64,000 bases of DNA from Tubulanus polymorphus (Eukaryota > Animalia > Nemertea), in NCBI RefSeq assembly GCF_964204645.1, contig NC_134033.1:5418231-5482230 (forward strand), written 5' to 3'. Both the position numbers and the translations under genes were made by a program. Positions 15,001-59,344 of this stretch are shown here, piece by piece (position 1 is the first letter of the stretch; the number at the start of each line of letters is the position of its first letter). The notes under the pieces are model-generated. The model saw only the letters and a program-made list of their open reading frames with translations. It ran no database searches and was not told where the DNA came from.

Positions 15001-17034
15001 TTTGTGTTTTTAAAGGTGCTTGAAACTGCTTTCAGTTGAGAAAAATGTCCAAAACTCCTTCAATTTTTAGAAATAGGCAATAAGAAATGTTGGTCTGGTT
15101 TGTACATTAGTGTCGTAATCGTTATATCAGATTTTTTTAACCCAATTAGGCGGTTAATCAAATTCAAAAATGAATTTAGTGTAACGGATAAACATTTGCT
15201 CATGAAACCATTGAATTAATGGTTTGACTGAGATAAACAGTACCGAATTAGGAGGAGTCTTACTACAATTATGATATGAAAATGATGCAGAGACTCCACG
15301 AAATGTTCTCCTTGAAAAAAAAAAGCTCCTTGAACTCATTATATCCAGGAATACTGATCTGTATGGACCTACTCGTTTGATTTACACTTGAAGTATCAAT
15401 GAATTGATTAGATTTCACAATCTTCCCTGGAAATCACCTTCAATAAATTATATTCTTATAAGTACATTGTAGATAGAAATGTGTGTGCATCGGCCTATTT
15501 TTGCATTCCTACGGGTGATATGATTGCTTTGTTATTTTTTTTCTCTATAGGAAGATGAAGATGATGACGAGGATGATGAAGATGATACCGCCGAATTGAT
15601 GGCCGAGTTACATAAGATAAAAAAAGAGCGAGCGGCAGAAGCAGCTCAGAAGGTAACAGTCAAAATCCCCCTGTGATGTCATCAATCTTGAAGAACCAAT
15701 AACATTACACCAGTAGATACTAGAACACCTCGAATCTTCATCATTGTAATTGTTCACCTCCTCCATAAATGCCCCTATGACATCATCATCATCGTTATTG
15801 TTCACCTCCTCCATAAATATCCCTATGACATCATCATCGTTATTGTTCACCTCCTCCATAAATATCCCTATGACATCATCATCGTTATTGTTCACCTCCT
15901 CCATAAATATCCCTATGACATCATCATCGTTGTTCACCTCCTCCATAAATGCCCCTATGACATCATCATTGTAATTGTTCACCTCCTCCATAAATGCCTC
16001 TATGACATCATCATCATTGTAATTGTTCACCTCCTCCATAAATATCCCTATGACATCATCATCGTTGTTCACCTCTTCCATAAATACCCCTATGACATCA
16101 TCATTGTAATTGTTCACCTCCTCCATAAATGCCCCTATGACATCATCATCATCGTTATTGTTCACCTCCTTCATAAATATCCCTATGTCATCATCATCGT
16201 AATTGTTCACCTTCAAAAATACCCCTATGACATCATCATTGTAATTGTTCTCCTCCATTAATCCCGGAAATGAATGAAAAAGTGCTACCAATGAGTGAAT
16301 GTTTTGAAATCGATGCTCAAATTTTCTTACGAAATTCATCAATGAGCAGGAGGAGCGACAAAGGCCAGTACAACCAATACCCTTGTCTCTATTAATCCCC
16401 CTATGACATCATCGTTCTCATACAACAGTTAGATGCTTGAACGAACAAAACTGCGTGTTATATGACCCATCACTCACCGAAAGGGAAATGTTACCGGGAC
16501 ATTGAATATCGAATCTGTGTATTTCACAGGAAGTCGAAAAGAAACAAGAGGAAGAACGAATTCGAATGGAAAACATAGTCAAAGGCAATCCACTTATTAA
16601 TCAAGAGAAAATGTCGGCAGATTTTAAAGTTAAACGAAGGTAAAGTCGTTTTCCCTGAACTCGGTGAAATATTTACGGCAGTCTCAACGCTACTGAGTTC
16701 ACTGATTGTCAGCTCGGTGAAATATTTACAGCAGTCCCGACGTTACCGAGTTCCCTGATTGTCAACTCGGTGAAATATTTACAGCAGTCCCGACGTTACC
16801 GAGTTCACTGATTCTAAACTCAAGTCAAGTGAAAGTCTCATAGTCCCAATGTTACCGAGTCGGCGCCGTTTACCGTATTTCATTTTCATCGTTTTCATTT
16901 TTCTTTCCAGATGGGACGACGACGTTGTGTTCAAAAATTGCGCTCGCGGCGAAAAGGAAAAAGACAAACGTTTCATAAACGACACGCTGCGATCGGATTT
17001 CCATCGGAAATTCATGGAGAAATACGTGAAGTGA
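12085..17034 (+). CDS. CWC15: Spliceosome-associated protein CWC15 homolog, 223 aa, 6 coding exons
   Basis: Exons 12085-12215, 12926-13041, 14680-14768, 15551-15652, 16530-16639 and 16911-17034 total 672 nt, are all GT-AG and are in phase. The N-terminus [15 protein letters not shown]...[14 protein letters not shown] and C-terminus [18 protein letters not shown]...[20 protein letters not shown] are CWC15 hallmarks. Confidence 0.97.
12305..12613. mobile_element. Penelope-derived palindromic mini-element with a decayed hammerhead (12411-12450, minus) and a nested palindromic MITE (12455-12566)
   Basis: gagagaaatcccacaataacgaagccaagat is inverted at 12574-12605. The end resembles the pLTR end of the intact element at 41630-41685. 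The minus strand reads CTGATGA-T-GGCTAAC-AGTT-GTTAGCC-TAAACGTC. Confidence 0.65.
15740..16260. repeat. ~39-45-bp minisatellite in a CWC15 intron
   Basis: Unit ttgttcacctcctccataaatatccctatgacatcatcatcgtta, about 12 copies. Confidence 0.9.
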
Positions 17035-18022: not shown

Positions 18023-19082
18023 TGATACCTTGTTTCTTGGTCATTTTGTATATCGCTATTAAATTCGTAATCAGTTCAGTTCTATAGCTGCCAGGTCTGT
18101 TATTGTTAGCTTGATCATGATTTTGAAAAATTTTTAGTGTACATGGTAGATAGGTGGCCGGCCGGGTCAACTTTATAACTCAGCTGAAATGAGAAATAGG
18201 GATCATTCATTTATAATACATATGCATAACATTTTATACATGAAGGATTAAGTACGCAATTGCAGTTACCCCATCCCCCTCCCCTAATGCGTAGGTAATA
18301 GATGAATGATCCTACAAGGTATCAATTTTTTAGCAGGCTTTAACGCTTTATTTTCCCTATCTTATTTCGGGGCAGTTTTAAACCTTTCCAGACGAGTAAC
18401 AGTGGAATAAAACTGAATATTGTTTCGTATTTTTGTTTACGCGCTGAATAATGCATTAGCATGTTTTAATTGGCCCTCAGAATTCGCACATGTACCAGCG
18501 CCGATTGAAGGTGTGATGATCCGTGTACCCCGCTGTATTAGTCTAGTACCTAGCCGTTGTTCCTCAAACAAGGTTGTAGGGAACCGTAACAACGACTGGT
18601 ATTCAGACTACCCGCTGTATACGGTATTGTGTAAACAGAAGGACAAAAAAAAACAATTCTCTCAATTTTTGTAAAGAATCCTCAATAAATAAACTACGTG
18701 TATCGAAAAAAAATGATTCCAGCGTTTGTGCGTCTTATTTGTATCGTTCGTCTCACCCGAAACCCATTCGGTAGGGGGCGACTGCAGTTTAAGTGTCTCT
18801 TAAGGTTTATGTACCGGTACGATTACGATTTCATTTTACAACTCGACCATTTCCAGAATATATGGAGGAAAAATATTTACAAAACAACACTTAAGTGATA
18901 ACAATTTAAGAATAAAAAGTTACCTAAAACTAGCGCCACAGGGTGACCTAAACTGCAGTTAGTCCCCCCTTGGAATTTTTTGGGGGCATCCCTTGGATCC
19001 GCCTCTAGCTGCTTCAGACGTAACTAATTGGCCCCGAGGATCCGAGGAGAGGGCCAGTCTACTGAAGAATTTAGCCAATCAC

Positions 19083-20234
19083 TGTTGAGTAAGGGTTTAA
19101 GAGGGCTTTTCAATCTAACTAAAATGCCTGGTTTCAAGGATTTATGTATTCTACAACAACTACAGCTTTTTAACAGTTTACTCAAACCGATAGTTATGTA
19201 TGGTAGTGAAGTTTGGGGAGTTGTGCCCTATATGTCATTTCTAAAGAAACCAAATGGGTCACTCACGGATATGGGTTTACCATATAACAAATGGGTAGTG
19301 CAAAAGCTGCAGTCAAGATTTTTTAGGTTCATAATGGGTCTTCATTCTAAGGGGTCAATTTTACCTATTCTTGGTGATTTGGGAGAGGTTCCACTCTATA
19401 TTGAGATTACTATGTCAGCTTTGAAGTACTGGAGGTCAGTTATGTCGTCGGGTAATAGCAAATCATTGATCTACTTGTCTTTTCTAGAACAATATGAAGA
19501 TGACAGGGAGGGCAAATTCAATTATATATCTACCGTTAAATCAATTCTATCAAATTTAGGGTACTCAAATGTTTGGAACAACTTGGGGCATTATTCGAAT
19601 AGCATTATTCTGGGTATTAGAAAGCGTCTGTCAGCTATCTTTGTGGATCTCTGGCATAAGGACATAAGATCAAGTGATCATTCCCGTTATTTTTATAAAG
19701 CAGTTAAAGTAAGTTTTAAGTTAGAAAAGTATTTATTAGTGCTAAAAGATTTTAACCTCAGAAATGCTGTTGCTAAATTACGGACGTCTACTCACAGCTT
19801 AATTATTGAAAAAGGTAGACACCGCGGTATAGAAAAGGAAAATCGTTTGTGCAATATTTGTAATGTGTTGGACGATGAATGTCACTTTTTGTTCCATTGT
19901 AAAAGAGTTGCCAATCTGAGAAAGGAATTAAATATAGCTATCTTAGACGTAAATAGTTAAATCTCCACTTTCGACAACCTAAACCCTACAACCAGCATTG
20001 TTCAGCTAGCCAAATTTATTAAACTCGGTCTGCCATTGTCCTAATATTTCTTCGATTAATGTTCTGTATGTTTTCAATTATGTTTTAACTCATCTGTAAT
20101 TAGTGTTAATTATGCTTCATTTTATTATTTGTTTATCTCCTATTATGTATATACTTGATTTTCCGAATTTGTATCAGTTGCAAACAATGTTTTATTAATG
20201 TTTATGCTGAATAAAGATTGAATTGAATTGAATT
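19083..20234 (+). mobile_element. 5'-truncated non-LTR retrotransposon (ORF2 C-terminus, 3' UTR and simple-repeat tail)
   Basis: ORF 19028-19960 has LFNSLLKPIVMYGSEVWG, KLRTSTHSLIIEKGRH and a Cys/His motif RLCNICNVLDDECHFLFHC. It ends in aataaa followed by (attga)n. Confidence 0.85.
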
Positions 20235-22193: not shown

Positions 22194-22922
22194 ATCTATT
22201 CCGAACAAAAATTTGTTTATTTATTTAGTGAAATCCATGTGCATTTTCATTCGTGATAAATTCAGGTTTAGTATTGGGCGGGATCGTCTAAACTGGAAAT
22301 ACTGTCGGCTGTAGAAATAAAAATGAGAAACAATTGATAATAGAATTAATCAAGGAGACGAAGAGACACTCTATATTCTGCATTGACAATGATAATGATG
22401 CAATATACTCTAAGAGTTCTAATGGTTGGGGTCATGGGCCATCTTAACCCGGATTCGAACCCATTAACGCTAAAGCTGTTCCCCGATTCCCTTGACCTCG
22501 ATCTATTCCGAACAAAAATTTGTTTATTTATTTAGTGAAATCCATGTGCATTTTCATTCGTGATAGATTCAGGTTTAGTATTGGGCGGGATCGTCTAAAC
22601 TGGAAATACTGTCGGCTGTAGAAATAAAAATGAGAAACAATTGATAATAGAATTAATCAAGGAGACGAAGAGACACTCTATATTCTGCATTGACAATGAT
22701 AATGATGCAATATACTCTAAGAGTTCTAAGGCTGTAGAAATAAAAATGAGAAACAATTGATAATAGAATTAATCAAGGAGACGAAGAGACACTCTATATT
22801 CTGCATTGACAATGATAATGATGCAATATACTCTAAGAGTTCTAATGGTTGGGGTCATGGGCCATCTTAACCCGGATTCGAACCCATTAACGCTAAAGCT
22901 GTTCCCCGATTCCCTTGACCTC
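22194..22922. repeat. Near-identical 307-bp tandem duplication plus an internal ~115-bp duplication, spanning the last exon of the secreted polyprotein gene
   Basis: atctattccgaacaaaaatttg starts at both 22194 and 22501; gctgtagaaataaaaatgag occurs three times. Confidence 0.9.
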
Positions 22923-25900
22923 GCGACTCGTTAAGAGTCGTTACCAGCCGACCCGAATCCGGTCAGGTTCGGAAGGATGTTTCTTCCTGGGTGTCTGGGT
23001 GTATCACGGTGTGTGTACGTACGTATATATCTATATCAGGGGTCCGAAACTACTCGTCAAGATTGTCTCAATGTTGATCTATTGATCTATGATCTCTCGC
23101 CCCCCCCCCCCATCATTTGGTTCACTTTTTAGACTCAGGGGAGATTATATTTTGTCATTATATATTGTAATTATGTACACGATTTAATTTTTTCTACTCA
23201 CTGATGATTTGTTTGACGGCATCTTTCACGTCTTTAAGATCGTTGATTTTGTCTTTCACCAGAGCCACCAGTTCGTCTTTAGTCACCGTGGCCTTGTCTT
23301 CCAGTGTGGCCAGGTATTTTGTCACCTTGTCCAAAGCGTCGCTTCCTAGATCGCTAACAGCGCTACCGAGACTCGTCAGCGACTGAAGAGACAAAAGGAA
23401 ATAAGCGGTGACTCGAGATCTTCGACGGCGCAATGATATACTTGCTAGAGGTTTTTGTGTCGTCAAGTAAGTCTTTCTTTCGCTTCTAGAGGTAAGGGGG
23501 CTACACGTCAGTGAGTCCTCACGATTAATAAAACAATATATCCGTGTTGAAGCGATTTAGAGAGAATACCACAATGATAACGATAAAAAAAAAACATTCC
23601 GATAATGTAACTGAAGGTAGTGGTTTATCCAACGTTTCGACTATATCCTAATAGTCATCTTAACTGCATTATTCCTGAAGATGACTATCAGGATATAGTC
23701 AAAGCGTTGAAACGTTGAAATTAGTAAGTCCTAGTGGGGCTGGTTGCACAGCCAAGATTCAAGGCCAGTGCTTAGTTCCACAATCGGACGAAATTTACCC
23801 GTTTAAAATACAAGATAGTCGCCCTCGCCACTTATGGAATTTGGAATAAGGCCGCAAAGGGATGTTAAGATAAAACTTGCCGCCCTCGTCACTTTTCCTT
23901 AGGACTAACAAGAAACAATGTATTCCTTGGCCTAATCGTTGGGTTGGTCCTAAATCATCGACACTTAACCCCTGTATTTTTTGTACTTTTGTTTGCAATC
24001 TCATAAAGAACATAGTAAAAAATGTAGTTACAGATATGAGCAAAGATAATAATGAGATTGCCAGGGACCAGAAGAATCCAGATATTATCGAGCCGGGTCC
24101 CTGTCAATGTCAATGACAAATAAAGGAAAACTGTATATTGGCGAACTTATAAAGCCATACATTGACGAAAACCAGCGATGAGGATTTTTATTGAAAATAA
24201 GTGCAGAACGTTTAGGATATGATTAATGATTTTACGTAATATTTGAATAGAATTATATATCAATTGTATACAGGAAAGGAGGTGAGACGTGAAATGATAT
24301 TTAAAGGAAGAAACAGACAACCTATTACGAATTTAATGTGGGGTGCTATTCCAGATTTTGGGACCAGGGCCCAGTTTCACAAAAAGGATTAATGCCTAAA
24401 TCGATATAAGATAAACTGAATTAATGAAGAAATTAAATCGATTTAAGAATTAAGACTTTTTGTGAAACTTGGCCCATATATACTTATGGAGAATCTCCTA
24501 TGGGTTGTGCGACAAAAAACGGTATAGCCAGATCCTGTGCATTGCGTAGAATTCTTAACCTGTCTCTCGTTTTCAAAAGACAATAAATACATACAGTTAT
24601 CGGGCACTAGATGATTGACTAGTTTATACATAACGACCGCTGTAAGAAACTTATTAGTATCAGTATTATCAGTGAGGGTAAGAAATCTGCCATCGAATAG
24701 TGCTCGTGTTTGGGAGGTACATTACATCACACAGATTTAGATAATCATTTACACAGATACTTCGAACGCCTTCTCGACTAGAATTGCAATTCATGACGAA
24801 TTCAGCGTATTTGATATACGTACGTCTAGGATCGCTTTGAAATGCGGCTGGAAGAAATCCTTGGTTTTTGTAGCTAGGCTATAGCCGGCGACCTCGCTGA
24901 CGTCGTTGTCCATTTCTCCTTGTATTTTCGCCAATGCCTCTTTACCTCTGTCTATAGAAGAGTATTGAATTGCGTATGGATTATATACGTATACAACTGT
25001 TGAACTGGACCCATAGTCAAATTAAATCTTCGCAATTGTGGAACTGGATTCAGAGTCAAATAAAACCCGCACAACTGTGGAACTAGGTCCAGAGTCAAAT
25101 TAAACCCACTCAACTGTGGAGTTGGGTGCAGAGTCAAAGTTTTGTACTTGAAAATGTTATACCCGTTTTGAAACTTACTCACGACTTCTTGAATGACTTC
25201 GTCGATCTTTTCGACTCCGTTTTTCACCGATTCGGGAGTGATGTCGACGATGTCATCGATGGCGTCTTCGATTTGTTGTCCGATCTCGTTCAAGATTTCC
25301 TTCGATTTGCCGACATTTTTGTCGACGACTTTTTGGAACTTGGCTGCGAAGCTCTTCGCGCCGGCGATAATGCCGGCAAGTCTCTCCTTGAGCGCCAGAC
25401 CGCGCTTACGTCGACCTGATGTCAATGACCCGAGTAGACTATTGATCAGTTGACTAGCACCCTCACCCCCTTTACCCCCGGTAAACGCTCCCAGCAAAGA
25501 ACTAATCAAATCTCCACCCCCTGATCCGCCGCTTAAGCCCTTAACCAGCTGATTAACCAGATCGGACGCCCCCTGGCCGCCGATAGACATCGCGAATTTC
25601 TTCATAAACTCGGCGCCCTCGCCCGAAGCCAGCTGAGAGAGCAGCTTCTGCAGCAGCGTTTTGCCGCTTTTATCGGGCGTGGTGAGGATGCTAATCAACT
25701 GCGGCACGACGTCGGCGTTGCCGTTTTTCTGCGCGTTCGTAATGACGTTCATGATTTTCTGTAAAATCAAACCGGCGTCGATTTCGTTGCTACCTGCGCT
25801 TCTTTTCGTTTTCCCGTCGGCGGCGTTCAGTATTTCCATCAGCTCTTTCATCTGGTCGTCGTCCGAATCGATCTTCTCCTTTTCGCCGGCCGGTTTCGGT

Positions 25901-28900
25901 TTCTCGGCTTCTTTGTGATGATGACTGTCGACGACTTTAGCGATAGTCGACGCGTCGATTTTGCCTGCGTTTAGCATGCCGAGTATGGCCTGGAAGTCTC
26001 CCGGGATGGGGCCTCCTCCGCCCGACGCTCCCGCTTTTAAGGCGGCCTCGGCGCCCTCGACCAGAATATCTACGAACTCTTTCAACAGTTCGGCGTCGAT
26101 TTTCTGACCGGTCTCCGACCCGACGTTTGTACCGGTGATTCCGACAGTTCCGACGCCTCCTTCAACTTTTGACCATAAAGCTTCGATGAGACCTGTTAAA
26201 TAAAGAATGAAACATCCAAAAACAACATTCGTGTTTTTATCAAAAACCTACACGACATAGTAGCTGTTGAAAGTATGCGCTACTGAATGGGTCTACGAAA
26301 GCCCACGACACGGGGAAACACAGTAAACGCGGGATAAAACATGTTTCATCTCGAAAACGTCGTTTACGAAACCACGTTTCTCGTTTCTCATGTAGCCTAC
26401 GCACGACGCAGGGAAACGCTCCGGAAACATGTTTCTATCTCATGTTTCCGTGTTTTCACGCGTCGTGCGCGATGGACTTCTACAATAGTTTCAAGACGTT
26501 AGAGCGCTTATAAAACTAAGATGGTCTTATAGACTGGTGGTCTTGAATCTAAGCTTTCACTGCGCTACTGATGGACCCTGATTCATGAAATCAGCCTGCG
26601 CGAGGCCGGAGAAAGAAACTAAAAAAAAAATCGATAGAGTTCGTTACTTACGTCGTAGCTACGTACCTTTCTCCGAGACACGTTTTTGGAGAGTTCGAAA
26701 CTGTGCCCGACTCCGAAGCGTTCGCCGCGCACAAAACCAAGCATTTGATTAAAAAGATTACTAGCAAACACCTCCTCTGAACCATTTGATTGATATCATA
26801 ATAGGCAGGGTTGGTTCTTCTGTCAAGACCAGGCTAAGGGAATTTTGGAATTTTTGAACCCAGGGTCTAAGCGAGGGAAGCTGTTATGCGAAGCGACTCC
26901 TGGAAAGCTGGCGCTACTGAAGCAAATTACATTTTGAAAGCGGGTTTAAACAAAACAGGAATCGCTATATTCTAATTCACAAATGACCAGTTGAAACGCT
27001 GGTTCAACAATTTCATTCAACTACCCTACTAGATCTATGATATCGGTCGTAGCGTCGCCGGCGTTTCCTTCTTGACCAGTTTGACCGGTTAAACCGCCCA
27101 GAATGTCGCCTATACCGCCGGCGCCGCCCTCACCGATCGCGCCGGCAGCGCCGCCTAGCAGCTTGCCGACTGTGTCCTTATCACCTCCGCCGATGACGCC
27201 TTTCGAAATCAACGTCTTCAAGATATCTGCGGCGCCTTCGACGCCTTTAGCCGCTAAATCGACGAGCTCGCCGACCAGTTCGGCGGTGATCTTCTGTTGC
27301 GTGGATGATCCCAAATTGATGCCGCCAACTCCACCTTGACCGACCCCCTCAGACCCAAAAATATGTTTCAGGACGCCTGAAAATTAAGTAAGAAAATATG
27401 AACTTTTATCAATAAAGGTCAGCTCTATTCATATATATTCAATGGAAACTCACTATCTAAATTGTTAGGATCAACTTTTGACAAGTCACGTCGTTTCAGA
27501 TTTTTCAGACTGTTCTTGGCGGCTTCGGCAGCGATCGCTAAGAATTTATCTAGTAATGATTTACCACCGGCGGCGCCAGTGGAAAATGAGCTCGGTTTCG
27601 ATCCTCCGAATCCACCATCAGGACCTCCGAATCCACCGTTATCTCCACCAAATCCACCATCAGGACCTCCGAATCCACCGTTATCACCTCCGAATCCACC
27701 GTTATCACCACCGAATCCACCATCAGGACCCCCGAATCCACCGTTATCTCCACCGAATCCACCATCAGGACCTCCGAATCCACCGTTATCTCCACCGAAT
27801 CCACCATTATCTCCACCAAATCCACCGTTATTTCCGCCATTATCACCACCGAATCCACCGTTATTTCCACCGAATCCACCGTTATCTCCACCGAATCCAC
27901 CATTATCTCCACCAAATCCACCGTTATTTCCGCCATTATCACCACCGAATCCACCGTTATTTCCACCGAATCCACCGTTATCTCCACCGAATCCACCATT
28001 ATCTCCACCAAATCCACCGTTATTTCCACCATTATCACCACCGAATCCACCGTTATCTCCACCCAATCCACCATTATCTCCACCGAATCCACCGTTATCT
28101 CCACCGAATCCACCGTTATCTCCACCAGTTGATCCGCCGTTTCCAAGACCATCTATCAAGTTATCGATATCACCACCATTTCCTAGACCGTTGATGAGAT
28201 TGTCAATCTGACCGCCCGTGACCTTGCCTCCTGTAGAGCTGCCATCGGTTAATCCTCCAGTCATAGCCCCGCCTCCTGTTAGCTTCTTAGCCAATTCGGC
28301 CGCACTTATGACGCCTTTCGCTACCAGGTCGACCAAGTCGGATACGAGTTCAGCGGTGATCGTCTGTTGAGTCGATGATCCGAGGTTCGTGCCTCCGATG
28401 CCGCCTTGACCGACGCCTTCCGAAGAGAAAATGGCCGCCAAAACACCTGCAATATTGAAAGGATTTTAGAGGGAATAATGTACGTGACATTTGGACAGAT
28501 TATAGCAAACTACTGTTGCTACCGAGTTCCCTGATTCTGAACTCGGTAAAATTTTTACAGTAGTCTCAACGCTACCGAGTTTCCTGATTCTGAACTCGGT
28601 GAAATATTTACAGTAGTCTCAACGCTACCGAGTTCCCTGATTGTCAACTCAGTGAAATATTTACAGCAGTCTCAACGCTACCGAGTTCCCTGATTCTGAA
28701 CTCGGTGAAATATTTACAGCAGTCTCAACGCTACCGAGTTCCCTGATTGTCAACTTGTTGTGAAATATTTACAGCAGTCTTAACGCTACCAAGTTCCCTG
28801 ATTGTCAACTCGGTGAAATATTTACAGCAGTCTCAACGCTACCGAGGTCCCTGATTGTCAACTCGGTGAAATATTTACAGCAGTCTCAACGCTACCGAGT

Positions 28901-31900
28901 TCCCTGATTGTCAACTCGGTGAAATATTTACAGCAGTCTCGACGCTACCGAGTTCCCTGATTGTCAACTCGGTGAAATATTTACAGCAGTCTCAACGCTA
29001 CCGAGTTCCCTGTTTCTCAACTTAGTGAAATATTTACAGCAGTCTCAACGTTACCGAGTTCCCTGATTGTCAACTCGGTGAAATATTTACAGCAGTCTCA
29101 ACGCTACCGAGTTCCCTGATTGTCAACTTGTTGTGAAATATTTACAGCAGTCTCAACGCTACCGAGTTCCCTGATTGTCAACTCGGTGAAATATTTACAG
29201 CAGTCTCAACGCTACCGAGTTCCCTGTTTCTCAACTCAGTGAAATATTTACAGCAGTCTCAACGCTACCGAGTTCCCTGTTTCTCAACTCAGTGAAATAT
29301 TTACAGCAGTCTCAACGTTACCGAGTTCCCTGATTGTCAACTCGGTGAAATATTTACAGCAGTCTCGACGCTACCGAGTTCCCTGATTGTCAACTCGGTG
29401 AAATATTTACAGCAGTCTCAACGCTACCGAGTTCCCTGTTTCTCAACTCAGTGAAATATTTACAGCAGTCTCGACGCTACCGAGTTCCCTGATTGTCAAC
29501 TCGGTGAAATATTTACAGCAGTCTCGACGCTACCGAGTTTTCTGATTGTCAACTCGGTGAAATATTTACAGCAGTCTCAACGCTACCGAGTTCCCTGATT
29601 GTTAACTCGGTGAAATATCTACTTCGCTACAGAATGATGAATTATGCTTACTTTCTAAATCGTGCGGATTGACTACCGCCCTTTTTCGTTTGCCGAAGTT
29701 TCCCATCTGGGAGAATATGTCGCCGGTAAGTTTCTCGGGGTTGATTGCGCCCGATCCTCCGTTGCCCATCGAACCAAGAATACCGCCTAGAGCATCGCCG
29801 CCCTGTCCGCCTAGTACACCGCCGAGGGCGCCACCTGCTCCACCGGCACCGGGACCGGTCAGCGCTCCGAGAGGACCACCAGCGCCGCCACCGGCCATCC
29901 CACCAGTCAGAACCTTGCCGGCCAGATTACCTGCGATTTCGACGCCTTTAGCGCCCAGATCGATCAGCTCGCCGATCAATTCGGCGGTGATCGCTTGTTG
30001 ACTCGACGAACCGAGATTCGCCCCGGCCACGCCGGCCTGGCCGACACCTTCCGATTTGAACAAGTTTTCCATAACACCTGTCAAACGAAAACAAACGACG
30101 ATTGGTATATCTAATGATGAACCCAACCCACGCGGCAAAACGTTCGTTTCGGCAAAACAGATAATACGTTCTAATAACCATCAAGGCGATAACAATAAAA
30201 ACCTAATTTTCTAATGAGTACGAACCGTTTAATAAACACGAATGTTTTCGGGTTCATATCCCCTCATTAGGTGAAATACAAGCGAATCAAATGAAAAAAA
30301 CTACAGATTTAAAAACAACATAAATGTTATGGAAGTGTTATAAACGCTTAGTTTGTATGACTGTTGTGAACTGTTATAAATTTCAGTATAGTTAACGAAT
30401 AAAACCCCACAGTAGATTTGTAGAAACAGTTTATTTCGTAACAGTTTCAAGAAATAAACTATAAACCTCATCTTCAGAGGAACAAAAATACAATTCTGTA
30501 ATTTTTGTTCGTTTATTGTTTTTTCCTTGAGACTCTTTCTACAAATCTACTGTGGGGTTTTATTCATTCACTTGGTTTGTTATTAGCTTAGAATTTAACA
30601 CTTCGTAATTCTATTTAACTTATGTTGTATATAAATACATATGTCGTTTGATGATCTGTTTCACTTGTATTTCACCTGATGAAGGGGATACAATCCCGAA
30701 AACGTTCGTGTCAGTAAACCGTTCTTATTCATTGGAAAATGAGGTTTTTATTGTCATCGTTTCCATGGTTATTCGGATACTTAAACTATCAACCCAAGAT
30801 AATACGTTGTTCGCAAAACATTCCGAGTAAATGTTTTTACCCGCAACCGATAAAACGTTCAACGCACAAGGCAAAACGAAACACAGCGAAAAGGTTTTTC
30901 ACTAAGATAATTACTGCTTTCCGTATGAGTTGGGCTTAAATATAACAATTACAATTAAGATCCTCACAATGCGGGCTACACTTTCTGAAATGCTTCTGCT
31001 ACATTCATGTAAGGCTCAATTCATGTACGTAAGGTTCAGAATGAGGCTACAGAGTTAACATTTTTTAACATCACATGTAAATTAATTGTAATCAAATCCT
31101 TGTCTTGATTCAACATAGGTTACACGCGATTTCTAGGCTTAAAGCGACGACATTCGCAGCCAATGAATCCAATAAAGTCTAAAGTTCTGGACCCTATTCC
31201 ACAGTTGTGTGGTTATACGTTTTGAAAATGAACTGATTTCAATTTGCGATAAAACTCTTACTTACAACTGCAACTGTGGAACTGAATCCCGTGCTAATGT
31301 ATATCACTTTTGGCATACATACCCATATTCTTTTACGTATCGAAATTGTTTCTATTTGTAGGCGTGTGCCTAAATCATGTACTTTAAAATAAGTATTTTG
31401 ATTTTTCTTTCTACTTTGCTATCGAATCGGAATCGGAATTCGAGCCTCTATACTAGCGGAGGCTTAGTCGGTATTCGAAACCTACTCGGCGATCGTAGAT
31501 CAACTCGAATATTGAATTCGATATGTGAAGGAAATTGGAAAAAAACCTTTTCACAAAATTACATAGACACATTGTCTATAATCGATCGTGTATCTACTTA
31601 CTGGCAATATCATGTGGATTCAATGTTCGTTTCTGAGTCTCCTTTTCTGCAATTAGTAGTCAATTAGGAAAGCAATCAATATTCACAGGTCATGTATGCC
31701 AACACAAATGTAACCTTTGCGTTCTTGTTTCTTTTTTCGTATATTTCTTTTTTTTGAATTTTCGCTAGCAAGCTAAGCAACATTAACCGGGGCGTGCTTA
31801 TGAAAGAATGAATAGCGTTAAAAGCGAAGGCAAAACGATATTACGATTTCCGGTCGTATCACGAAGCCCGTTCGCCATTTTTTATTGATAGCATAAACGC

Positions 31901-32755
31901 GCGGTATAAAGCCCCAAGCCTTTTTATCAGATGTCGGACGAATTATCATTTTCTCGCGTTAAAGCAAAACCGGAAGCGGAAGCGCGGACTTCGATTATCG
32001 AAAGTCCTTCGTACGTACCGTATTGACGTAGTCCTCGATAGCCGGCATTTAGTAAAGTGGTAGGTTAAGATTTGGCGACTCCGGAACGAAATATTCAGTT
32101 AAAACTTAGTATTTTTTAACTCTTGGAGTTTACATTCAAACCAACCAATTTTCGAATGTAGTAATGGTGCATATAACGGGGTAACCCGCAGTGATAATGT
32201 TGCAATCGAGATTCCACTTATGGCAAGCGAGGATCCGCCAGGTTTGCGTTCGATTTCTTCTACATTTCGATAAAATCTAAATGAACCTTTCTCTTAAATG
32301 AATCAATTATTTATGAAGACTATATGCAAACCCGATAAGAAGAATGAAAGTGTTGTACATTTTGGTGAGTGCCGTGATTGTATATGGATTCAGAGGTCTA
32401 AAAATCCAGTTCAATGTTAATGAACTGATGTTCACAACGAACTGCGCATCACGCCATCTGGTGGGATAGCTGGTTTTGCGGGTACCCCATTAGAGATATT
32501 ATAATCTAGCGCCTAGAAACTTGAAACTTCTTCATTCTAATTAGCAAGATACTTCTACCAAATATAAAAGACGATATGAAAAAATAGCTGGGCTTTCACC
32601 ACGGAATTATAATTCGAAAATCTATGCAGATGTATCTTACTGGCTGTGTCTCGGGCGTCGAACGCTTGGTTCGTGTATCTGGGTTCGATTTTGTTGATCC
32701 ATTCTTCAGCGTGGCTGGTCGCTACCAGCAGCAATATCAGTCCAAGAAACTTCAT
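22575..32755 (-). CDS. Uncharacterised secreted Gly-rich polyprotein precursor (~1,090 aa) with four repeated modules
   Basis: Exons are 32755-32641 (signal peptide MKFLGLILLLVATSHA), 30077-29652, 28446-27454, 27376-27030, an uncertain micro-exon 26700-26667, 26192-25179, 24951-24824, 23382-23202 and 22615-22575 (stop, then AATAAA). All junctions are canonical and phase-compatible except the 27030 to 26192 join, which needs the micro-exon. Confidence 0.85.
23560..23720. mobile_element. Penelope pLTR relic with two hammerhead motifs in inverted orientation
   Basis: aacgtttcgactatatcctaatagtcatctt (minus) and ttattcctgaagatgactatcaggatatagtc (plus) closely match the ribozyme of the intact element. 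Confidence 0.75.
27610..28125 (-). repeat. Coding 21-bp tandem repeat encoding GG(D/N/P)(N/D)GGF
   Basis: About 25 heptapeptide units inside exon 28446-27454. Confidence 0.9.
28518..29620. repeat. 52-bp intronic minisatellite, about 21 units; same family at 16655-16820
   Basis: Unit aactcggtgaaatatttacagcagtctcaacgctaccgagttccctgattgtc. Confidence 0.95.
30222..30725. mobile_element. Nested inverted-repeat element with hammerhead motifs in both arms
   Basis: Plus arm CAC-CTGATGA-AGGGGATACAATCCC-GAAA-ACGTTC-GTG (30673-30710); a mutated minus copy at 30237-30273; inner inverted pair aaaaccccacagtagatttgtagaaa / tttctacaaatctactgtggggtttt. Confidence 0.7.
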
Positions 32756-34658
32756 CGCCCTGAAGATGAAATAATAACGGTATGAAGAGTAGAGAGTAAT
32801 TTATTTATGAAGAAAGCGCCGGGTTCACATCGTTGAATTATCATAATTTTTCAGGAAAATATTTTTGAAAATTTGTTAATATTGCGATGGGAGTTTGTAT
32901 TTCGGAAATTCGAATACTTATGTACAGTTTTCGTAGGGGTTAATCTGTTTGAGGCACTGCTCAGGGTTCAATTTTACACAACAGGTTTAAGCTGAAAAAA
33001 CGTTTAAGTTTGAATCCTCGTCCAATCAAGTTTGAATCTTTGAAAACATTTTCGCATAAAAACTAAAAACTTTTGTTTTGTTCCTAACGATTTTTCCGAG
33101 GAGATTTCTGTATATCGTGTCGATGCTAAAATGCGTTATGAAATGGAATACATTTTTTGGAATGTTCTTCACATGGAAACGTTAATCTTATTATAACTTT
33201 CCAATAAATACTCAATCGATTCTTGCATTTTGAAAACATTTAATCTTTAATTTATATCAACGCTGATACACTTTTCGATTTGGTGGTTTTCTTTTTTACT
33301 TGGAAAAGATCTTCACGCGAAAACTTTACTTCAGTAAAATTTTTCGATATTTTATACCATTCGGATTTTTATTGCGGATTCGATATTTTGATATCGAAAT
33401 AAATTTTTCGTCTTCAAAAAAATCCTCGAATGAAACGAAATGAAAAAGATTTTGAAAGATCTTGAAAAGATTTCAAGATCCAGTTCTGCAGTTTGTTGGT
33501 GAAAGTTAAACCTGTGTCAAAATTAGGTCATTTCAAATAACTTAAATCTGAGTTAACTCTGAGTAGAAATTAGTTCATTTTCGACGAGTTAACGCCGAAT
33601 AAAATCTTAAATCGCAACTTTGGAATTTGATCCTGGATCGTGGTTAACTTTTAGAAAAAAATATCTAAAAAAAAAATTCAATTAGATAACGTTAAGTAAA
33701 ATCTCATCTCAAAACTGTCAAACTGGATCCAGCAGATGCTGCAGTTACACAGTAGTTGGTTAGAGTTGACCGGTGGATAGTTGACATAGTAACAATTGGA
33801 TGTACTTCGATATAAACAAAAAAGTCTGTAATTTCGACCGCCGATCACACAACTATATCTGTACTTCGATTTCAAAATCTAACCCCAGTTTCGCTCCCGG
33901 CAGGTGTGGTGGGTTTGTAAGGGACAGTGAATAAAAAAAACAAAAAATCTAACGAAATGTACCAACCAAATAAATAACAGGGTCAATTCCTATTTTAAGC
34001 AAAAACAAAATATTAGGTTGCTATTATGATATTTATCCGCCGGTTCTTATTAACGATATTGGCGACCATATTTCGAGCAATACTAGCCCTTTTTTAAATC
34101 GGGTACATCGAAGGTTAGTAGAATACCCGCACTCGCAGAGAACAGATTACAAGATAAAAGCCCACTATTCATAGATATTAAAGGTTTTAAAATCGAGAAT
34201 TTATTCTATCAAAAATTAATCGAAAAGACACACCTGGGCCCAGTTTCATAAAGAATCTTAAGCCTAAAACGATTAAGTTTGAAATGTTGTCCCCGTTGAA
34301 AACACGAAGTAATCACTGGCAATTACACTAAGAATGTTAGTTTAACCTATTTTTTATGAAACCGAGCCCTAGGCCCAGTTTCACGGAAAATTTTACTTAA
34401 ATCTCTGGTGTAATTGCCAGTGGTTACTTCATGTTTTCAATGAGGACAAGAATTCAAACTTAACCTTGTTAAGCTTTAACCTTTTCGTGAAACACTGACG
34501 GTAATCTCTAGGGTGAGATCGAAACATCTTTTATAATCAATTTTCGAATAAACTCTCGATTCGAACACTTTTATTCCGTATGTAGCCGGTTTTCTATCGA
34601 AATAACATCGAAAGTTATTATTTCATCTTTTCGCCCGCAAACTATAAAACAAACTCAC

Positions 34659-34742
34659 GTATTGTTGCCGATGGTGAAAGTCCGTCGCGTACGTATTGAT
34701 TAAGCGTGTGAACGGGGACATTCGGTACGCCGGCTTTATATG
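34659..34742 (-). promoter_or_regulatory. TATA box and short non-coding first exon of the secreted polyprotein gene
   Basis: TATAAAG on the minus strand at 34740-34734 and a donor AC|gtgagt at 34658. The acceptor ttcatcttcag lies just before the ATG exon (32759). Confidence 0.6.
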
Positions 34743-38829: not shown

Positions 38830-41238
38830 GTGATCATGCTACCCACGGATCGAAATATCGTATTAAAATTCTTCTTCTTCACGTTCCCGTACCTCGTCGC
38901 TAGCTTCCGAAATTATGAGAAATGCTATATCAAATCCAGGACTGCTAAAAGTAAAGTCAAGTTCCTTCAGGAGTGTTATGCCGAAAAAGTGGTTCCGCGA
39001 TCACTTTCTTGGATTTGGAAATACGACTCCAGCTCTGCGTTTCCACCCGAAGCTAACAAGCAACTCAAATTCGCTATAGATCGTGCTAAGGAAGACTGTA
39101 ACTATCAGTTCTATAAATTCCGTCAATCTCAAAATTATTTGAAGTCACACGTACCGGACCTATTCCTCTGGAAATCGCTCTCCACTATTGTTCAAGGCTC
39201 TGGAAAATATCATCAGCACAGAAAGTCCGTGGATCTTACCAACCAACTGAATAAACTCATTGATTCCAGCCCTTGGACTAGATTTAGCAACACCGAAAAC
39301 ATAGTAAATTTGTCTTCAACCACGTTATCTTCTACTCAGTGTCAACTTCTCGGCTACGGTTTGAATTTTTCTCTTCCTCATCAAGATAAACATGTTTTAG
39401 ACTTTGTCACCCAATTGGAATATCGCAAATCATCTCCGAACAGTTTGGACTATAACTTTATATTCATGAATCTACAGGCTATATGCGATCAACTCAACAG
39501 GAACCTTTTTGAATATCTACCTCGTCGATTTCGGCTCGCCCTCCAAGAACTACGGAAGTTAAAGACTATTAAAATATCTAAGGCTGATAAAGGTGGCAAG
39601 ATTGTGATTTTAGATCTGGATAATTATAATGTTAAAATGCAATCTCTCTTGGATAATCCTGGTGTTTATAAGAAACTTAAATCGAATCCTCTTCCTCGTA
39701 TGCAAGCTAATTTCAACAGAAGTCTTTCGGATATTATTAAACGTTTCCCCTCCGCTAAAGAAACTCTGAATAAGTTCCATTCACGTCTTCCCTCTTTACC
39801 ATATATCTATGGTTTGCCTAAAATTCATAAAGATAATGTTCCACTGCGCCCTATAGTCTCCAATTGTAATTCTCCTACATACCGGTTATCTAAATTTCTC
39901 GCGAAACAGTTATCTCCGGTGCTCGGTTCGTTCTCTCCGTCGCACCTTCGCCATAATCAACACTTACTTGAACGTATTAAGAATATTATCCCTGGCAACG
40001 ACAAATTTATATCATTTGATGTTACTTCCCTTTTTACCAATGTTCCTCTTGGACCTACTCTTGATTTCTTAAAACGCAGATTACCATCACTTAACATTAA
40101 CTTCGGCATTCCTACGGATTGTATCATCGACCTTATCTCTATTTGTACGACGGACTCCTTTTTTGAATTCAACAATTGTTTTTACGAGCAGACATTCGGT
40201 ATCGCTATGGGAAATCCTCTAAGTCCTATTCTAGCTAATTTATTCCTAGAACATGTTGAATCTGAAATATTGCCTCTTTACACTGATATTCACCCTAAAA
40301 TCTGGCTCAGATATGTTGACGATGTTCTGGCTTTGGTTCCCTTTGACTTCAATGTAGATAACTTTCTTATATATTTAAACTCCCTTTACCCGTCTCTGGC
40401 TTTTACGTATGAATGGGAATCTAATAGTAAAATACCTTTTCTGGATGTTTTGATTTTTAACTGTGGATCCTTTTTGAAATTCGCGGTTTATAGGAAACCT
40501 ACCAACGCTGAATCCTACCTCCATTACTTCTCTTTTACTTCTCCGGATATTAAACTCGGTTTAGCTCAAGGATTATTTCTTCGCGCTTTGAGAATTTGCG
40601 ACCCCTCATTTCTACCCGATGAAATTCACCATATTAACCAATCTCTCAAAAAACTTGCCTACCCCGATTTCCTATTGAAAAAAGCTCTACTTAAAGCTCG
40701 TACTACGCATTTTAGAAATAACAACCTTAGAACTCCTACGTTGGCTACCGATAAACAGCCTATCATTGTACCGTATGTACCTTTCCTCGAGAATTCTAAA
40801 GTTTCTCTTCGGTCACTAAATAAACAACTCATCTTTAAATACAATAATAAACTTAGTAACATATTGATTAACAACAAACCGAAAACCGAATCCCTAAACT
40901 GTGGAATTTATAAAATACCTTGTAAAGTTTGCGACAAAGTATATATAGGAGAAACAGGTCGGAATCTTAATCAACGCATAAAAGAGCATAAATTAGATGT
41001 AAAAAACTTTAAACCTGAAAGCGGAGTTGCTAGTCATGTTTTTCAGACTTCACACAATTTTGATTTTGCTAATGCTGAATTAGTTTACCCTTGCAGCGAT
41101 AAAACTAGAAGACATATTTTGGAATCTGCATTAATTATTGAAAATTCGAACAACGTTGTAAACCTTAACAATGGTTTTTCACCCCATAATAAACTTATAT
41201 CAAAATTCCTCTGTAAACTGGTTAAACTCAACACTTGA
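38830..41238 (+). CDS. Penelope-like element polyprotein: reverse transcriptase + GIY-YIG endonuclease
   Basis: Uninterrupted 802-aa ORF (first ATG at 38836) with KADKG, YGLPKIHK, PLRPIVS, SFDVTSLFTNVP, GIAMGNPLSP, RYVDD, VYRKPT and GIYKIPCKVCDKVYIGETGR..RIKEH. Confidence 0.96.
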   Translation: MIMLPTDRNIVLKFFFFTFPYLVASFRNYEKCYIKSRTAKSKVKFLQECYAEKVVPRSLSWIWKYDSSSAFPPEANKQLKFAIDRAKEDCNYQFYKFRQSQNYLKSHVPDLFLWKSLSTIVQGSGKYHQHRKSVDLTNQLNKLIDSSPWTRFSNTENIVNLSSTTLSSTQCQLLGYGLNFSLPHQDKHVLDFVTQLEYRKSSPNSLDYNFIFMNLQAICDQLNRNLFEYLPRRFRLALQELRKLKTIKISKADKGGKIVILDLDNYNVKMQSLLDNPGVYKKLKSNPLPRMQANFNRSLSDIIKRFPSAKETLNKFHSRLPSLPYIYGLPKIHKDNVPLRPIVSNCNSPTYRLSKFLAKQLSPVLGSFSPSHLRHNQHLLERIKNIIPGNDKFISFDVTSLFTNVPLGPTLDFLKRRLPSLNINFGIPTDCIIDLISICTTDSFFEFNNCFYEQTFGIAMGNPLSPILANLFLEHVESEILPLYTDIHPKIWLRYVDDVLALVPFDFNVDNFLIYLNSLYPSLAFTYEWESNSKIPFLDVLIFNCGSFLKFAVYRKPTNAESYLHYFSFTSPDIKLGLAQGLFLRALRICDPSFLPDEIHHINQSLKKLAYPDFLLKKALLKARTTHFRNNNLRTPTLATDKQPIIVPYVPFLENSKVSLRSLNKQLIFKYNNKLSNILINNKPKTESLNCGIYKIPCKVCDKVYIGETGRNLNQRIKEHKLDVKNFKPESGVASHVFQTSHNFDFANAELVYPCSDKTRRHILESALIIENSNNVVNLNNGFSPHNKLISKFLCKLVKLNT

Positions 41239-42346: not shown

Positions 42347-45300
42347 TCAGTTTGTACACGTCACCGTTATCGAAGAACTCTCCAAATTACCGCTATTTCC
42401 CTGTGTATAATAAAGTCTCCCGCCCATGTCGAACGTGAAGCGTGAATTTTTCGATTTGTGGAACGTGGCCGCTTTCACCGGCAGCGACTTTCCTTTCGGA
42501 CTGGCAGTGCCGCACGACAACGAGGATTCTGGCCTGCTCATAAACCTCGAATTGCTGGCCGACGCAAAAGCGAAGGTTTTGCCGTCGTGGTTGAGGTATA
42601 TTGCTTGCGCGTTACTCGACAATGGACACGTAGTTATTTCGCTGGCCGCTGACGAGGTATCCGTCGGAACGTTGAACAGATGAAGGGTCCCGCCGCCTGG
42701 AAGTAAACGATAAAACTATAACTTGACAGTTTATTGACGCTTTGAAAAATAACAGATCTATGTGTGTAGCGTGATATTGTTGACGATGAATAATATAATA
42801 TAAACGATATGATATAAAGCATCAATAAAGTTATTTTGAATTCGAATGTACCAACTCGGCAACCAGTCTAGTCCCAGTATTGATGACGCACCGCACATCA
42901 ACGAAAAATGTCATGATTAAAAGACATGAATGCAATTAATTTGGAGTTAATGAGCCATGAGATTAATTTGATTACAAAAGTGCAATTGTTTTTTTTTTTG
43001 AAACGACAATTTTGATGACGTAGTGCGCACCGACTCACGCAGTTTCTCCCATACATAATGCGTACCAGTAATCAATATCTATGAACTGCAATTGCCTGAA
43101 CGGAAAATATTTTTTTTCACTTCAATACGCAGTCTACCTCAAACTTCGTACATCAAGTTGAAATATTGTTAGGCACGTCTTGATCGAAGAGAAGCAACAA
43201 TATGAAGAAAGATATTAGACGTTTCGACTCAATGACCATGAAAGGACAACACCACTTGAGGTCAGTTTTATAGACTGGTATCATAACCTCTAAAATCACG
43301 AATATCTATATATGTTAACTTACTGGCCACATCACAGACTGTTGTGGTACATTCTATCGCATCGACTGAGTTCAATCCGGGGAAAACCGAACTTATGGCC
43401 GCTTTAGTCGTAGCTCCGGTCGCCAATTGAATCTCATTCGCGTATATATAAACGGAATCCCGGACGAACAACCATAAACCGGGTGAACTACATTTGCCCG
43501 GTGTAAACCATGTCGCCGAAACGGCTGTCGTTGAACACGGAGGAACAATCGGCGTGAACGAGCTGGGTGGAGCTGTACATATATCTACAACTGGTGTTTT
43601 TGTAGTAGTTGTAAGTTCCGTAGTAGTTGTAGGCTCCGTAGTAGTTGTAGGCTCCGTAGTAGTTGTAGGTTCCGTAGTAGTTGTTGGTTCCGTAGTAGTT
43701 GTAGGCTCCGTAGTAGTTGTAGGCTCCGTAGTAGTTGTAGGTTCCGTAGTAGTTGTTGGTTCCGTAGTAGTTGTAGGTTCCGTAGTAGTTGTTGGTTCCG
43801 TTGTAGTTGTAGGCTCCGTAGTAGTTGTAGGTTCCGTAGTAGTCGTTGGTTCCGTAGTAGTTGTAGGTTCCGTAGTAGTTGTAAGTTCCGTAGTAGTTGT
43901 AGGTTCCGTAGTAGTCGTTGGTTCCGTAGTAGTTGTCGGTTCCGTAGTAGTTGTAGGTTCTGTAGTAGTTGTAGGTTCCGTAGTAGTTGTTGGCTCCGTA
44001 GTAGTTGTTGGTTCCGTAGTAGTCGTTGGTTCCGTAGTAGTTGTAGGTTCCGTAGTAGTTGTTGGTTCCGTAGTAGTTGTAGGTTCCGTAGTAGTTGTTG
44101 GCTCCGTAGTAGTTTTAGGTTCCGTAGTGGTTGTTGGTTCCATAGTAGTTGTAGGTTCTGTAGTAGTTGTAGGTTCTGTAGTAGTTGTTGGTTCCGTAGT
44201 AGTTGTTGGTTCCGTAGTAGTTGTAGGCTCAATAGAAGTTGTTTGTTCGGTGGTAGTTGTAGGTGATGTAGTAGTTGTTGTAGGTGGTGTAGAAGTTGTA
44301 GGCTTCGTGGTAGTTGTAGGCTTCGTGGTACTTGTAGGTTCCATGGTTGACGTCTACAATAGAAGAAATCAAAGGTTTTGATAATAAGGATCCATTTAAA
44401 TTAAACTCTATTTTTGCTTAAGTAAAGACAAGAAAACTACGTTTATTGACGCCTCGAAGAATAACACACATATTCCATTGCCTATTATCATTGATCCTTT
44501 GCGCTGTAATTCTTTTTTGATGACGTCATATGAATCGATGTGTACTACGTCATATCTAGTGGCAATTGAATACAATTTTCGATTCAATAAATTTCCATAT
44601 CTTTTTGATGATGGTTTTTGAGTGGATGTGCCCTACGTCATTGATATTGGGGCTAGCTTGGTTAGACTCTTTGCCGTCAATTCAATTCAATCGTCGATAT
44701 ATTCAATTCCAAAACAACTTTATTGATCTTTACGGTCGACTATATTGCGCAATTTAAGTGTTGTTTCAAGTCGTCAATAAATTTTCAAGTTAGTTTTTTC
44801 TCGCTTTTGAAGGACTACCGGATACGCGCTAGCAGACGGTACAGGTATTTCGGGATGCGTGCCGATGAAACAGTACCCCTCCCCGGCAGGGATTCGAACC
44901 TGATGGCATTGGGATTGCCACAGTACGAAACCCTACCTCACTAGACCTAGTGCGCAGCTACACGCGCAGCTCGGATGATGTCATTATTAGCCAATCAAAA
45001 ATCCCGTTTTATTTTAGGCCGGGTTTTTCCGTTTATAGTTATTCCGTGAAGTCGAGAGGAATCCCACAATAAATTCAGCCAAAAATGAAAAGTTCTATAT
45101 AAAAATGATTATATTTCGAGCAACCTTTTTCATTATTAGATTTTTAAATTATAGCTAACTTTTAATTTTTGGCTGAATTCATTGTGGGATTTCTCTCTCG
45201 TTATTCATCATACACGGATATTGTGTATCTTCTCGTCTCATATTCTTCCCTGGAATCAGCGATTATACAACGAGCAATCTGATCGGTGCCGCAGGTTTTC

Positions 45301-55690: not shown

Positions 55691-56767
55691 TCAAACATCA
55701 CACAGATAACCAATAATCAAAACCTGTTTAGCTTTTTTTCTAAAGGCTCCGTTCGTTGCGCAGTAAACGAAGAAGTTTACGGATGAGTCTATGACACTGA
55801 GCAGAATTCCTACTTTACGCATGACCATTAGTTCATCCCCGGATAGACCGTGAGGAAAATTGTACGTTTTAAAAAATTCTAGCAAACGGTCCAGCGACGC
55901 GGGAATTTCACACATAAAGAACAGAAATACAATGATAAGAACCACTTTTAATATCTTCAGTTCGGTAGATTTTTCAACGGGCGCCGCGGCGTCTGTGTGA
56001 AATTGTTTCTTTCGATTTAGTTTTCTAAACATCATAATTCCGAACAAAGTTAGATTAATCGCAGTTAGAAGCGTAAACGGTCCAATGACAGTCATGAAAA
56101 GATAGGAATTCCGAAGGATGATCGTCGCGATATAGGAATAATATTGAAAAAAAGGTGTCGGAATCGTTGTCACGCCGCAAGCACCCATTGTAAATAAATT
56201 ATGAAAACAAGGATCCGTGGCTCTTCCGGGTAAAGATGACGGAAAATAATACTGCCAGAAACAAATGGCGGAAGAAATACCGTTTAAAACTGCCAGAAAA
56301 ATGATATGTTTTTTGTTCCAGAATCGTTCGAAAAACAGCGGACTCGCGACAACCAGAAGTCTTTCAAAATTGATTATAACTACGGCCCAATTCTTTGCCG
56401 TTTGAAACGTATGAAACAGTGGTAGAACCCAAATAATAAATTCGTGTCCAAAATACCAGTCATCGTAACGGCCGAGGTGTGTGGTTGAATGTAAGAAAAT
56501 GATAGCAAATATTCGAATTGGATAAAGCAGTAACACTGAAATAAGAAACAGTAAATCGAACCAGGCAAGAACTATTATAGTTTGATAAATAGCGCGACCG
56601 ATCTTTCTGAATATTATGATAGAAGCAGAGTTTAGAATCATTCCAAAAACTGAAGCCGGAAAATATCCGTATATGTAAAGCTTATAACTGAAAACGTGAT
56701 CCCATCGTTCTGGTGGATGCCCGCAGCCGTCCAATGTAGTCGCGGAGAATATTGTCGTAGAATTCAT
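55691..56767 (-). CDS. Intronless rhodopsin-class GPCR, FMRFamide-receptor-like peptide/chemoreceptor group
   Basis: 358-aa ORF with seven hydrophobic segments, GMILN (TM1), LAWFD (TM2), FERLLVVASPL (DRY equivalent), CEIP (TM6), SSVNFFVYC..N..FR (TM7/H8) and an N-terminal NST sequon. Confidence 0.92.
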   Translation of the reverse strand: MNSTTIFSATTLDGCGHPPERWDHVFSYKLYIYGYFPASVFGMILNSASIIIFRKIGRAIYQTIIVLAWFDLLFLISVLLLYPIRIFAIIFLHSTTHLGRYDDWYFGHEFIIWVLPLFHTFQTAKNWAVVIINFERLLVVASPLFFERFWNKKHIIFLAVLNGISSAICFWQYYFPSSLPGRATDPCFHNLFTMGACGVTTIPTPFFQYYSYIATIILRNSYLFMTVIGPFTLLTAINLTLFGIMMFRKLNRKKQFHTDAAAPVEKSTELKILKVVLIIVFLFFMCEIPASLDRLLEFFKTYNFPHGLSGDELMVMRKVGILLSVIDSSVNFFVYCATNGAFRKKAKQVLIIGYLCDV

Positions 56768-59099: not shown

Positions 59100-59342
59100 T
59101 CAAACATCACACAGATAACAAACAATAAAAACCTGTTTAGCTTTTTTTTCTAAAGGTTCCGTTCGTTGCGGAGTAAACGAAGAAGTTTACGGATGAGTCT
59201 ATGACACTGAGCAGAATTCCTACTTTACGCATGACCATTAGTTCATCCCCGGATAGACCGTGAGGAAAATTGTACGTTTTAAAAAAGTCTAGCAAACGGT
59301 CCAGCGACGCGGGAATTTCACACATAAAGAACAGAAATACAA
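59100..59342 (-). pseudogene. GPCR pseudogene fragment (TM6-TM7 and tail)
   Basis: VFLFFMCEIPASLDRLLDFF...SSVNFFVYSATNGTFRKK, with a frameshift in an A-run. The 5' part is replaced by a LINE fragment. Confidence 0.88.
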
Positions 59343-59344
59343 AT

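Follow-up and report, generated by a model that had tools for sequence, protein, structure and literature searches.

A phase-1 cassette gene in the nemertean Tubulanus polymorphus encodes an orphan duplicated module and predicted secreted precursors with putative alternative 3' ends

The window analysed here is a stretch of 64,000 nucleotides from the genome of the palaeonemertean ribbon worm Tubulanus polymorphus (assembly GCF_964204645.1, contig NC_134033.1, positions 5,418,231 to 5,482,230); all coordinates given below are window positions. Its minus strand carries LOC141910871, a gene that is single-copy in the genome (268 Mb, 77 contigs) and is labelled as uncharacterized in RefSeq. The corresponding proteins XP_074657834.1 and XP_074657835.1 are identical to parts of the window. 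The coding exons are named E1 to E7 (Table 1). E1 encodes a signal peptide of about 16 residues, judged by eye from its hydrophobic stretch, and a leader of 22 residues. In the RefSeq protein of 366 residues, E1 is joined directly to E5, a segment of 378 nucleotides is taken out of E5, and E5b, E6 and E7 follow. The model thus describes the same gene, but skips E2, E3 and E4; three of the four modules, every Gly-rich repeat and the 126 codons of the inner segment are missing from the public annotation.

E2, E3, E4 and E5 each begin directly after an AG, in phase 1 (starts are the upper coordinates in Table 1), with a common module, exactly where the sequence-only reading of this DNA had located it on the minus strand. 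E2, E3 and E5 each have a length divisible by three. The module comprises 54 residues, and 16 of the 54 alignment columns are invariant in the four copies; modules 2, 3 and 4 are 61%, 63% and 37% identical to module 1. A profile built from the four modules recovered each copy at E-values of 6e-24 to 6e-28 and gave no further match genome-wide; within the gene, no fifth or degenerate module scored above shuffled sequences. Modules 1–3 differ mostly at third codon positions, with pairwise ratios of nonsynonymous to synonymous substitutions (dN/dS) of 0.30, 0.12 and 0.06. Comparisons with module 4 yielded 0.22–0.50; all these ratios are rough because dS is near saturation. The copies are old, functional and under purifying selection. 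The possibility that E2–E4 are dead exons is ruled out by the dN/dS values and by the protein fragment P0002 introduced below. Each module had further been described as being followed by a different Gly-rich tail, which is true of modules 1–3, whereas the tail of module 4 is charged and contains 12% Gly. The residue preceding LIEALW had been given as Gly; it is a Ser in the RefSeq join.

For database searches, the exons were used separately; the sole joined sequence used as a query and for folding was the database protein P0001. Among 1.84 billion protein representatives, HMMER found three matches, namely P0001, which is LOC141910871 itself, P0002 (E 1e-16), and P0003 (E 7e-4). P0003, an unrelated repeat protein matching at 22 Gly-rich positions, was rejected as a chance hit. 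P0002, the sole outside relative in this set, is a fragment of 113 residues (source merc, run ERR1712049); MERC was assembled from eukaryotic metatranscriptomes of Tara Oceans (10.1101/386110). In the fragment, a Gly-rich tail is followed by F-G-KRKR, then by an NPHD spacer and finally by a module that is 62%, 59%, 52% and 43% identical to modules 1, 2, 3 and 4. Its start matches the end of E2 (p 0.0002). A junction of the E2-to-E3 type therefore exists as mRNA in a second species, present in plankton, with the cleavage site conserved. The fragment probably stems from the larva or egg of another palaeonemertean. Contigs encoding P0001 or P0002 were looked for and none was found.

For modules 1–3 of T. 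polymorphus no protein was found among the 50% representatives or among proteins of 201–640 residues, and for the C-terminal piece no homologue of 104–330 residues. No relative turned up in any other annotated proteome searched. Pfam and NCBIfam gave only sub-threshold matches, the PDB sequence search nothing but designed repeat proteins, with E-values of 0.01 or worse, and the ESM Atlas no usable feature match, its structure rows being generic bundles. For the inner peptide of E5, the searches covered Pfam, NCBIfam and the T. polymorphus genome. Pfam lent no backing to a suspected resemblance between the module and the staphylococcal PSM-beta peptides. Judged by these sequence comparisons, the module is an orphan that belongs to no known family, in agreement with the sequence-only reading. 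In each of the five copies, its second half is an amphipathic helix (p 0.011–0.024). The AlphaFold model, calculated from five sequences, consists of a helix, a disordered Gly linker and a second helix and is of low confidence, with a predicted local distance difference test score (pLDDT) of 54 and a predicted template-modelling score (pTM) of 0.22.

The four basic motifs reported earlier, KRKR, KRR, KTKR and RRKR, are all present in the exons, and no exon encodes a Cys, as had been stated for the assembled protein. The assignment of these motifs to furin or convertases has to be refined: RRKR alone fits the strict furin motif R-X-K/R-R, whereas KRKR, KRR and KTKR are dibasic sites. Such sites are of the prohormone-convertase (PC1/PC2) type. 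KRKR and KRR are followed by spacers of 10–12 residues, and the four predicted new N-termini (for example AVVNPHDLES, SAGSNE and GLALKERL) are indeed encoded. Convertase-type processing gains further support from P0002, since this second species has retained both KRKR and the NPHD spacer. The module-3 exon E4 contains no cleavage site. N-glycosylation sequons occur neither in E1–E4 nor in P0001. Cleavage at these sites would release pieces of 155 residues (net charge -3), 329 residues (-23, 39% Gly), 129 residues (-9), 153 residues (-10), 131 residues (the inner peptide, +2), and 190 residues (the C-terminal piece, -10). Five of these six predicted pieces, whose lengths span 129–329 residues, are acidic, with isoelectric points (pI) of 4.1–4.9. 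The peptide between KTKR and RRKR is encoded almost exactly by the 378-nucleotide segment, which is either a true intron or a reverse-transcription artefact arising at the CAGGT shared by its two ends. In three pieces a Gly directly precedes a basic site or the stop; this possible amidation signal is weak because the Gly content is high (25% Gly).

Gly accounts for 25–39% of the E2–E4 pieces, and the 586 residues of E2–E4 include two His, no Tyr and no Cys. The E3 repeat of 175 residues is arranged in heptads and consists of 100 Gly, 27 Asn, 22 Phe, 21 Asp, 4 Pro and 1 Leu; it contains 22 GGF and 19 G-D/N-N-GG units. The C-terminal piece was modelled from its single sequence as an up-down bundle of four long helices (pLDDT 52–67); one helix is acidic and strongly amphipathic (p=0.001). 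The fold matches are generic bundles, most of them designed (best Z 14.6, root-mean-square deviation 2.9, 165 residues aligned), at values usual for generic bundles, and Foldseek found nothing at E 0.001 for this model.

The sequence-only reading had proposed a single precursor that carries all four modules and releases five to six subunits in a fixed ratio. This is doubtful, since RefSeq skips E2–E4 and E4 has a stop of its own and weak donors. RNA evidence probably underlies the skip, because an ab initio predictor would hardly pass over three open, GC-rich exons (GC, guanine plus cytosine). The frame of E4 runs open to a TAG, and the GC content drops there from 0.53 to 0.33; the other exon ends show drops of 0.10–0.16. 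At the inner phase-1 GT sites of E4 it does not drop (0.60 to 0.63 and 0.57 to 0.69). Furthermore, the tails of E4 and E2 can be aligned until just ahead of the E2 cleavage site (shuffle p 0.04). The donors at the end of E4 are in phase 0 or 2 and unable to join E5; the phase-0 donor could conceivably be spliced to E6 or to a micro-exon of poor support. In the simplest reading, E4 is probably an alternative terminal exon. Because RefSeq joins E1 to E5 and E4 runs to its stop with only weak donors, modules 3 and 4 are probably mutually exclusive and their ratio is set by splicing. Possible products are a protein of 629 residues with three modules (E1–E4), proteins of 366 or 492 residues (E1, E5–E7), the longer one being the RefSeq-type join with the inner segment retained, and a protein of up to 965 residues (E1–E3, E5–E7). 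Each unit exon combines its module and tail with a cleavage site and with the spacer that belongs to the following unit; therefore any upstream exon can be spliced in frame to any module exon further downstream, and every combination would be processed correctly. The notion of a secreted precursor with exon-duplicated modules under purifying selection is supported; the presence of all exons in one transcript is not.

It is plausible to assume a gland gene of phase-1 cassettes with two alternative 3' ends, whose cut products condense into a soft secretion; we assign a probability of roughly 0.45 to this model as a whole. A nemertean-type gland cell would make one or more precursors, either the Gly-rich E1-E2-E3-E4 form or forms using E5–E7. 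Prohormone-type convertases would cut them in secretory granules into the mostly acidic pieces listed above. The shared module, with its short helix, Gly zipper-like linker and amphipathic helix, may associate the pieces, and the tails may set their properties, the Gly/Asp/Asn/Phe heptads giving a reversible gel sensitive to cations or pH. The C-terminal four-helix bundle would act at interfaces. Upon release into seawater, a soft gel or film without cross-links may form, such as a mucus gel, a tube lining, or a coat of larvae or eggs. Self-assembly, tissue and material function are inferred, and so are the cleavage and the role of E4 as terminal exon. A tanned or disulfide-linked wall is disfavoured because Tyr, His and Cys are lacking, and classical antimicrobial or cytolytic peptides are disfavoured because the pieces are acidic. 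It appears rather unlikely that the gene introduces a new self-assembly module for a tunable marine material without cross-links, in the full sense that splicing selects tails on a common assembly head, convertases release them, and the recipes secreted by larva and adult differ.

Several observations weigh against the cassette model. For hardening of a tube there is no supply of Tyr, Cys or His apart from the two His of E2–E4, and the structure models of the module are uninformative, as their low scores indicate. RNA support for the E1–E5 join of RefSeq is a presumption. A canonical AATAAA is missing after the E4 stop, where only the variant AATATA is found at 26971. Finally, the weak phase-1 donors of E4 at 27185 and 27134 score like some real donors when the match to U1 is counted, donor strength being a crude base count only. 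One of these two GT sites might be used if all four module exons were contained in one mRNA for about 1050 residues with fixed stoichiometry; another route would lead through a micro-exon near 26700–26667, where the strong donor 26667 closes a stretch of 11 codons that includes a KR pair in the correct frame, within a region of unique DNA (26480–27020). However, the inner donors would sacrifice 37–54 codons that are GC-rich and resemble the E2 tail, modules 3 and 4 would be left without a cleavage site between them, and the micro-exon lacks a pyrimidine tract and depends on the weakest donor (27030). As E2–E4 are also absent from the RefSeq join, such a transcript is improbable.

Other functions of the pieces can be envisaged. 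The arrangement of one unit to an exon, together with dibasic sites and spacers (cf. PMC3415428), the amphipathic helices and the Gly residues ahead of basic sites or the stop, weak as this amidation signal is, would suit a precursor that releases several membrane-active or antimicrobial peptides for defence in the mucus, similar to the apidaecin or hymenoptaecin precursors. We consider this unlikely, given that five of the six pieces are acidic and all are long, that the modules are under purifying selection in a single-copy gene, and that homology to defence families is lacking, as are the Cys residues of the nemertean A-III/parborlysin. A set of lipid-binding or surfactant proteins similar to exchangeable apolipoproteins, serving granule packing, egg coats or larval lipids, is suggested by a weak match to ApoLp-III (PF07464, E 8e-4), by the modelled up-down bundle with its amphipathic acidic helix, and by the expression of P0002 in plankton, where eggs and larvae occur. 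Apolipophorin-III is an acidic amphipathic helical bundle similar in size to the modelled one, yet the match of 20 bits is far below the Pfam cut-off of 36.3, no apolipoprotein is among the top 50 fold matches of the C-terminal model, and here the bundle would be released from a larger precursor. Since the Gly/Phe repeats would also be left unexplained, we regard this assignment as improbable. The pieces might instead build different layers of the pseudocnidae, which are layered, rod-shaped secretory bodies of the proboscis; those of Tubulanus are four-layered and probably adhesive (PMC7897414), and a shared assembly module with differing tails would fit such layers. Pseudocnidae are present across palaeo- and heteronemerteans, yet no relative was found in any other annotated proteome searched, which makes this role very unlikely.

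A comparison with known systems helps to place the cassette gene. In the precursors of bee apidaecin and ant hymenoptaecin, a signal peptide is combined with repeated units that are accompanied by dibasic sites and spacers, and apidaecin has one unit per exon (PMC3415428). The signal peptide and the repeated units flanked by dibasic sites are common to both systems; in contrast, the units found here are large and acidic (with the exception of the inner peptide), have differing tails, and show no homology. Moreover, their spacers are not E/D-A/P dipeptides and are out of the X-A/P register. In the calcitonin/CGRP gene, a common signal exon is combined with alternative 3' exons, giving different convertase-cut products. 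The alternative splicing of this gene is noted in PMC13256775. The proposed two-ended layout would be alike, with E4 having its own stop and being skipped by RefSeq, but there is no homology, and each branch would give several pieces of 130–330 residues sharing a duplicated module. The gene belongs neither to the multipeptide-precursor nor to the calcitonin/CGRP kind. Nemertean cytolysins carry disulfides, whereas the pieces predicted here are Cys-free and acidic. The cytolysin A-III/parborlysin is a basic protein of about 10 kDa with a pI of 9.1 (PMC6410017). In hnRNPA1, the reversible amyloid or hydrogel cores hnRAC1-3 are characterised by (N)D(N) and (G)F(G) motifs (PMC6494871). The Gly-rich motifs are alike, but are secreted here and present in about 22 tandem copies; this is an analogy of composition and not of descent. 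Gly-rich low-complexity blocks are also found in marine materials cross-linked by dihydroxyphenylalanine (DOPA), dityrosine, His-metal bonds or disulfides, whose abundant Tyr, His and Cys are lacking here.

A good part of the nemertean mucus proteome lacks annotation (PMC12846013), and the literature searched names no proteins of the nemertean tube or pseudocnidae. The gene offers a small, Cys-free candidate that is amenable to synthesis. If the module drives assembly, it would be a novel component from which soft underwater materials can be built without oxidative cross-linking, and the gene would be a case of material composition tuned by splicing. If the gene encodes a defence or lipid-binding precursor, it would add one more orphan family of nemertean secretions.

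Table 1. Features of LOC141910871 and its surroundings in window coordinates. Positions of exon parts are given in reading direction.
Feature	Position	Strand	Remarks
Probable promoter and non-coding first exon	34659..34740	-	TATAAA 34740-34735; donor 34659; inferred from sequence
E1	32641..32759	-	ATG 32755, signal peptide, leader, phase-1 donor; in every model; RefSeq residues 1-38
E2	29652..30077	-	phase 1/1; module 1, Gly-rich tail, F-G-KRKR, acidic spacer; omitted by RefSeq
E2, module 1	30075-29914	-
E2, KRKR	29691-29680	-
E3	27454..28446	-	phase 1/1; module 2, heptad repeat, KRR, spacer; omitted by RefSeq
E3, module 2	28444-28283	-
E3, 175-residue repeat	28126-27602	-
E3, KRR	27496-27488	-
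E4	27021..27376	-	module 3 (27374-27213), Gly-rich tail, Val-Gly-stop (27023-27021); omitted by RefSeq
E5	25179..26192	-	phase 1/1; module 4, charged linker, KTKR, inner peptide, RRKR, start of C-terminal bundle
E5, module 4	26190-26023	-
E5, KTKR	25812-25801	-
E5, RRKR	25413-25402	-
In-frame GT-AG segment within E5	25416..25793	-	378 nucleotides; removed in RefSeq; CAGGT at both ends
E5b	24824..24951	-	phase 1/0; part of C-terminal bundle
E6	23202..23382	-	phase 0/1; part of C-terminal bundle
E7	22575..22615	-	last coding exon; stop 22577-22575; AATAAA 22532

Several repeats lie in and next to the gene. E7 is duplicated together with its acceptor, stop and AATAAA at a distance of 307 bp with 137 of 138 bases identical (22194-22920; second E7 copy at 22308-22268), which is either a recent duplication or an assembly artefact; the same stretch also holds a perfect tandem copy of 116 bp (22614-22845). 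An intronic minisatellite with 20.8 copies of a 53-bp unit (93% match) occupies 28518-29622, a 39-bp repeat 24993-25138, and an interspersed repeat 26298-26479; the latter measures about 180 bp and has 40 or more copies across the genome at 73–84% identity.

Further features were observed in the window. A LINE-like fragment (LINE, long interspersed nuclear element) is located at 19028-19960, and an open reading frame (ORF) of 802 residues at 38830-41238 (plus strand) resembles, by eye, a reverse transcriptase with a GIY-YIG-type end, as in Penelope-like retroelements. The frame of 244 codons at 15608-16342 (minus strand) is open and has acidic Asn/Asp-rich repeats; it is either a coding exon or a minisatellite. 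An intronless ORF for a peptide-receptor-like G protein-coupled receptor of 358 residues is found at 55691-56767 (minus strand), with a near-identical copy of its C-terminal part at 59137-59415 (minus strand). On the same strand as LOC141910871 and 10 kb upstream, a second possible mucus gene (42347-48217, minus strand) encodes a secreted protein with an EPTTTT mucin tract.

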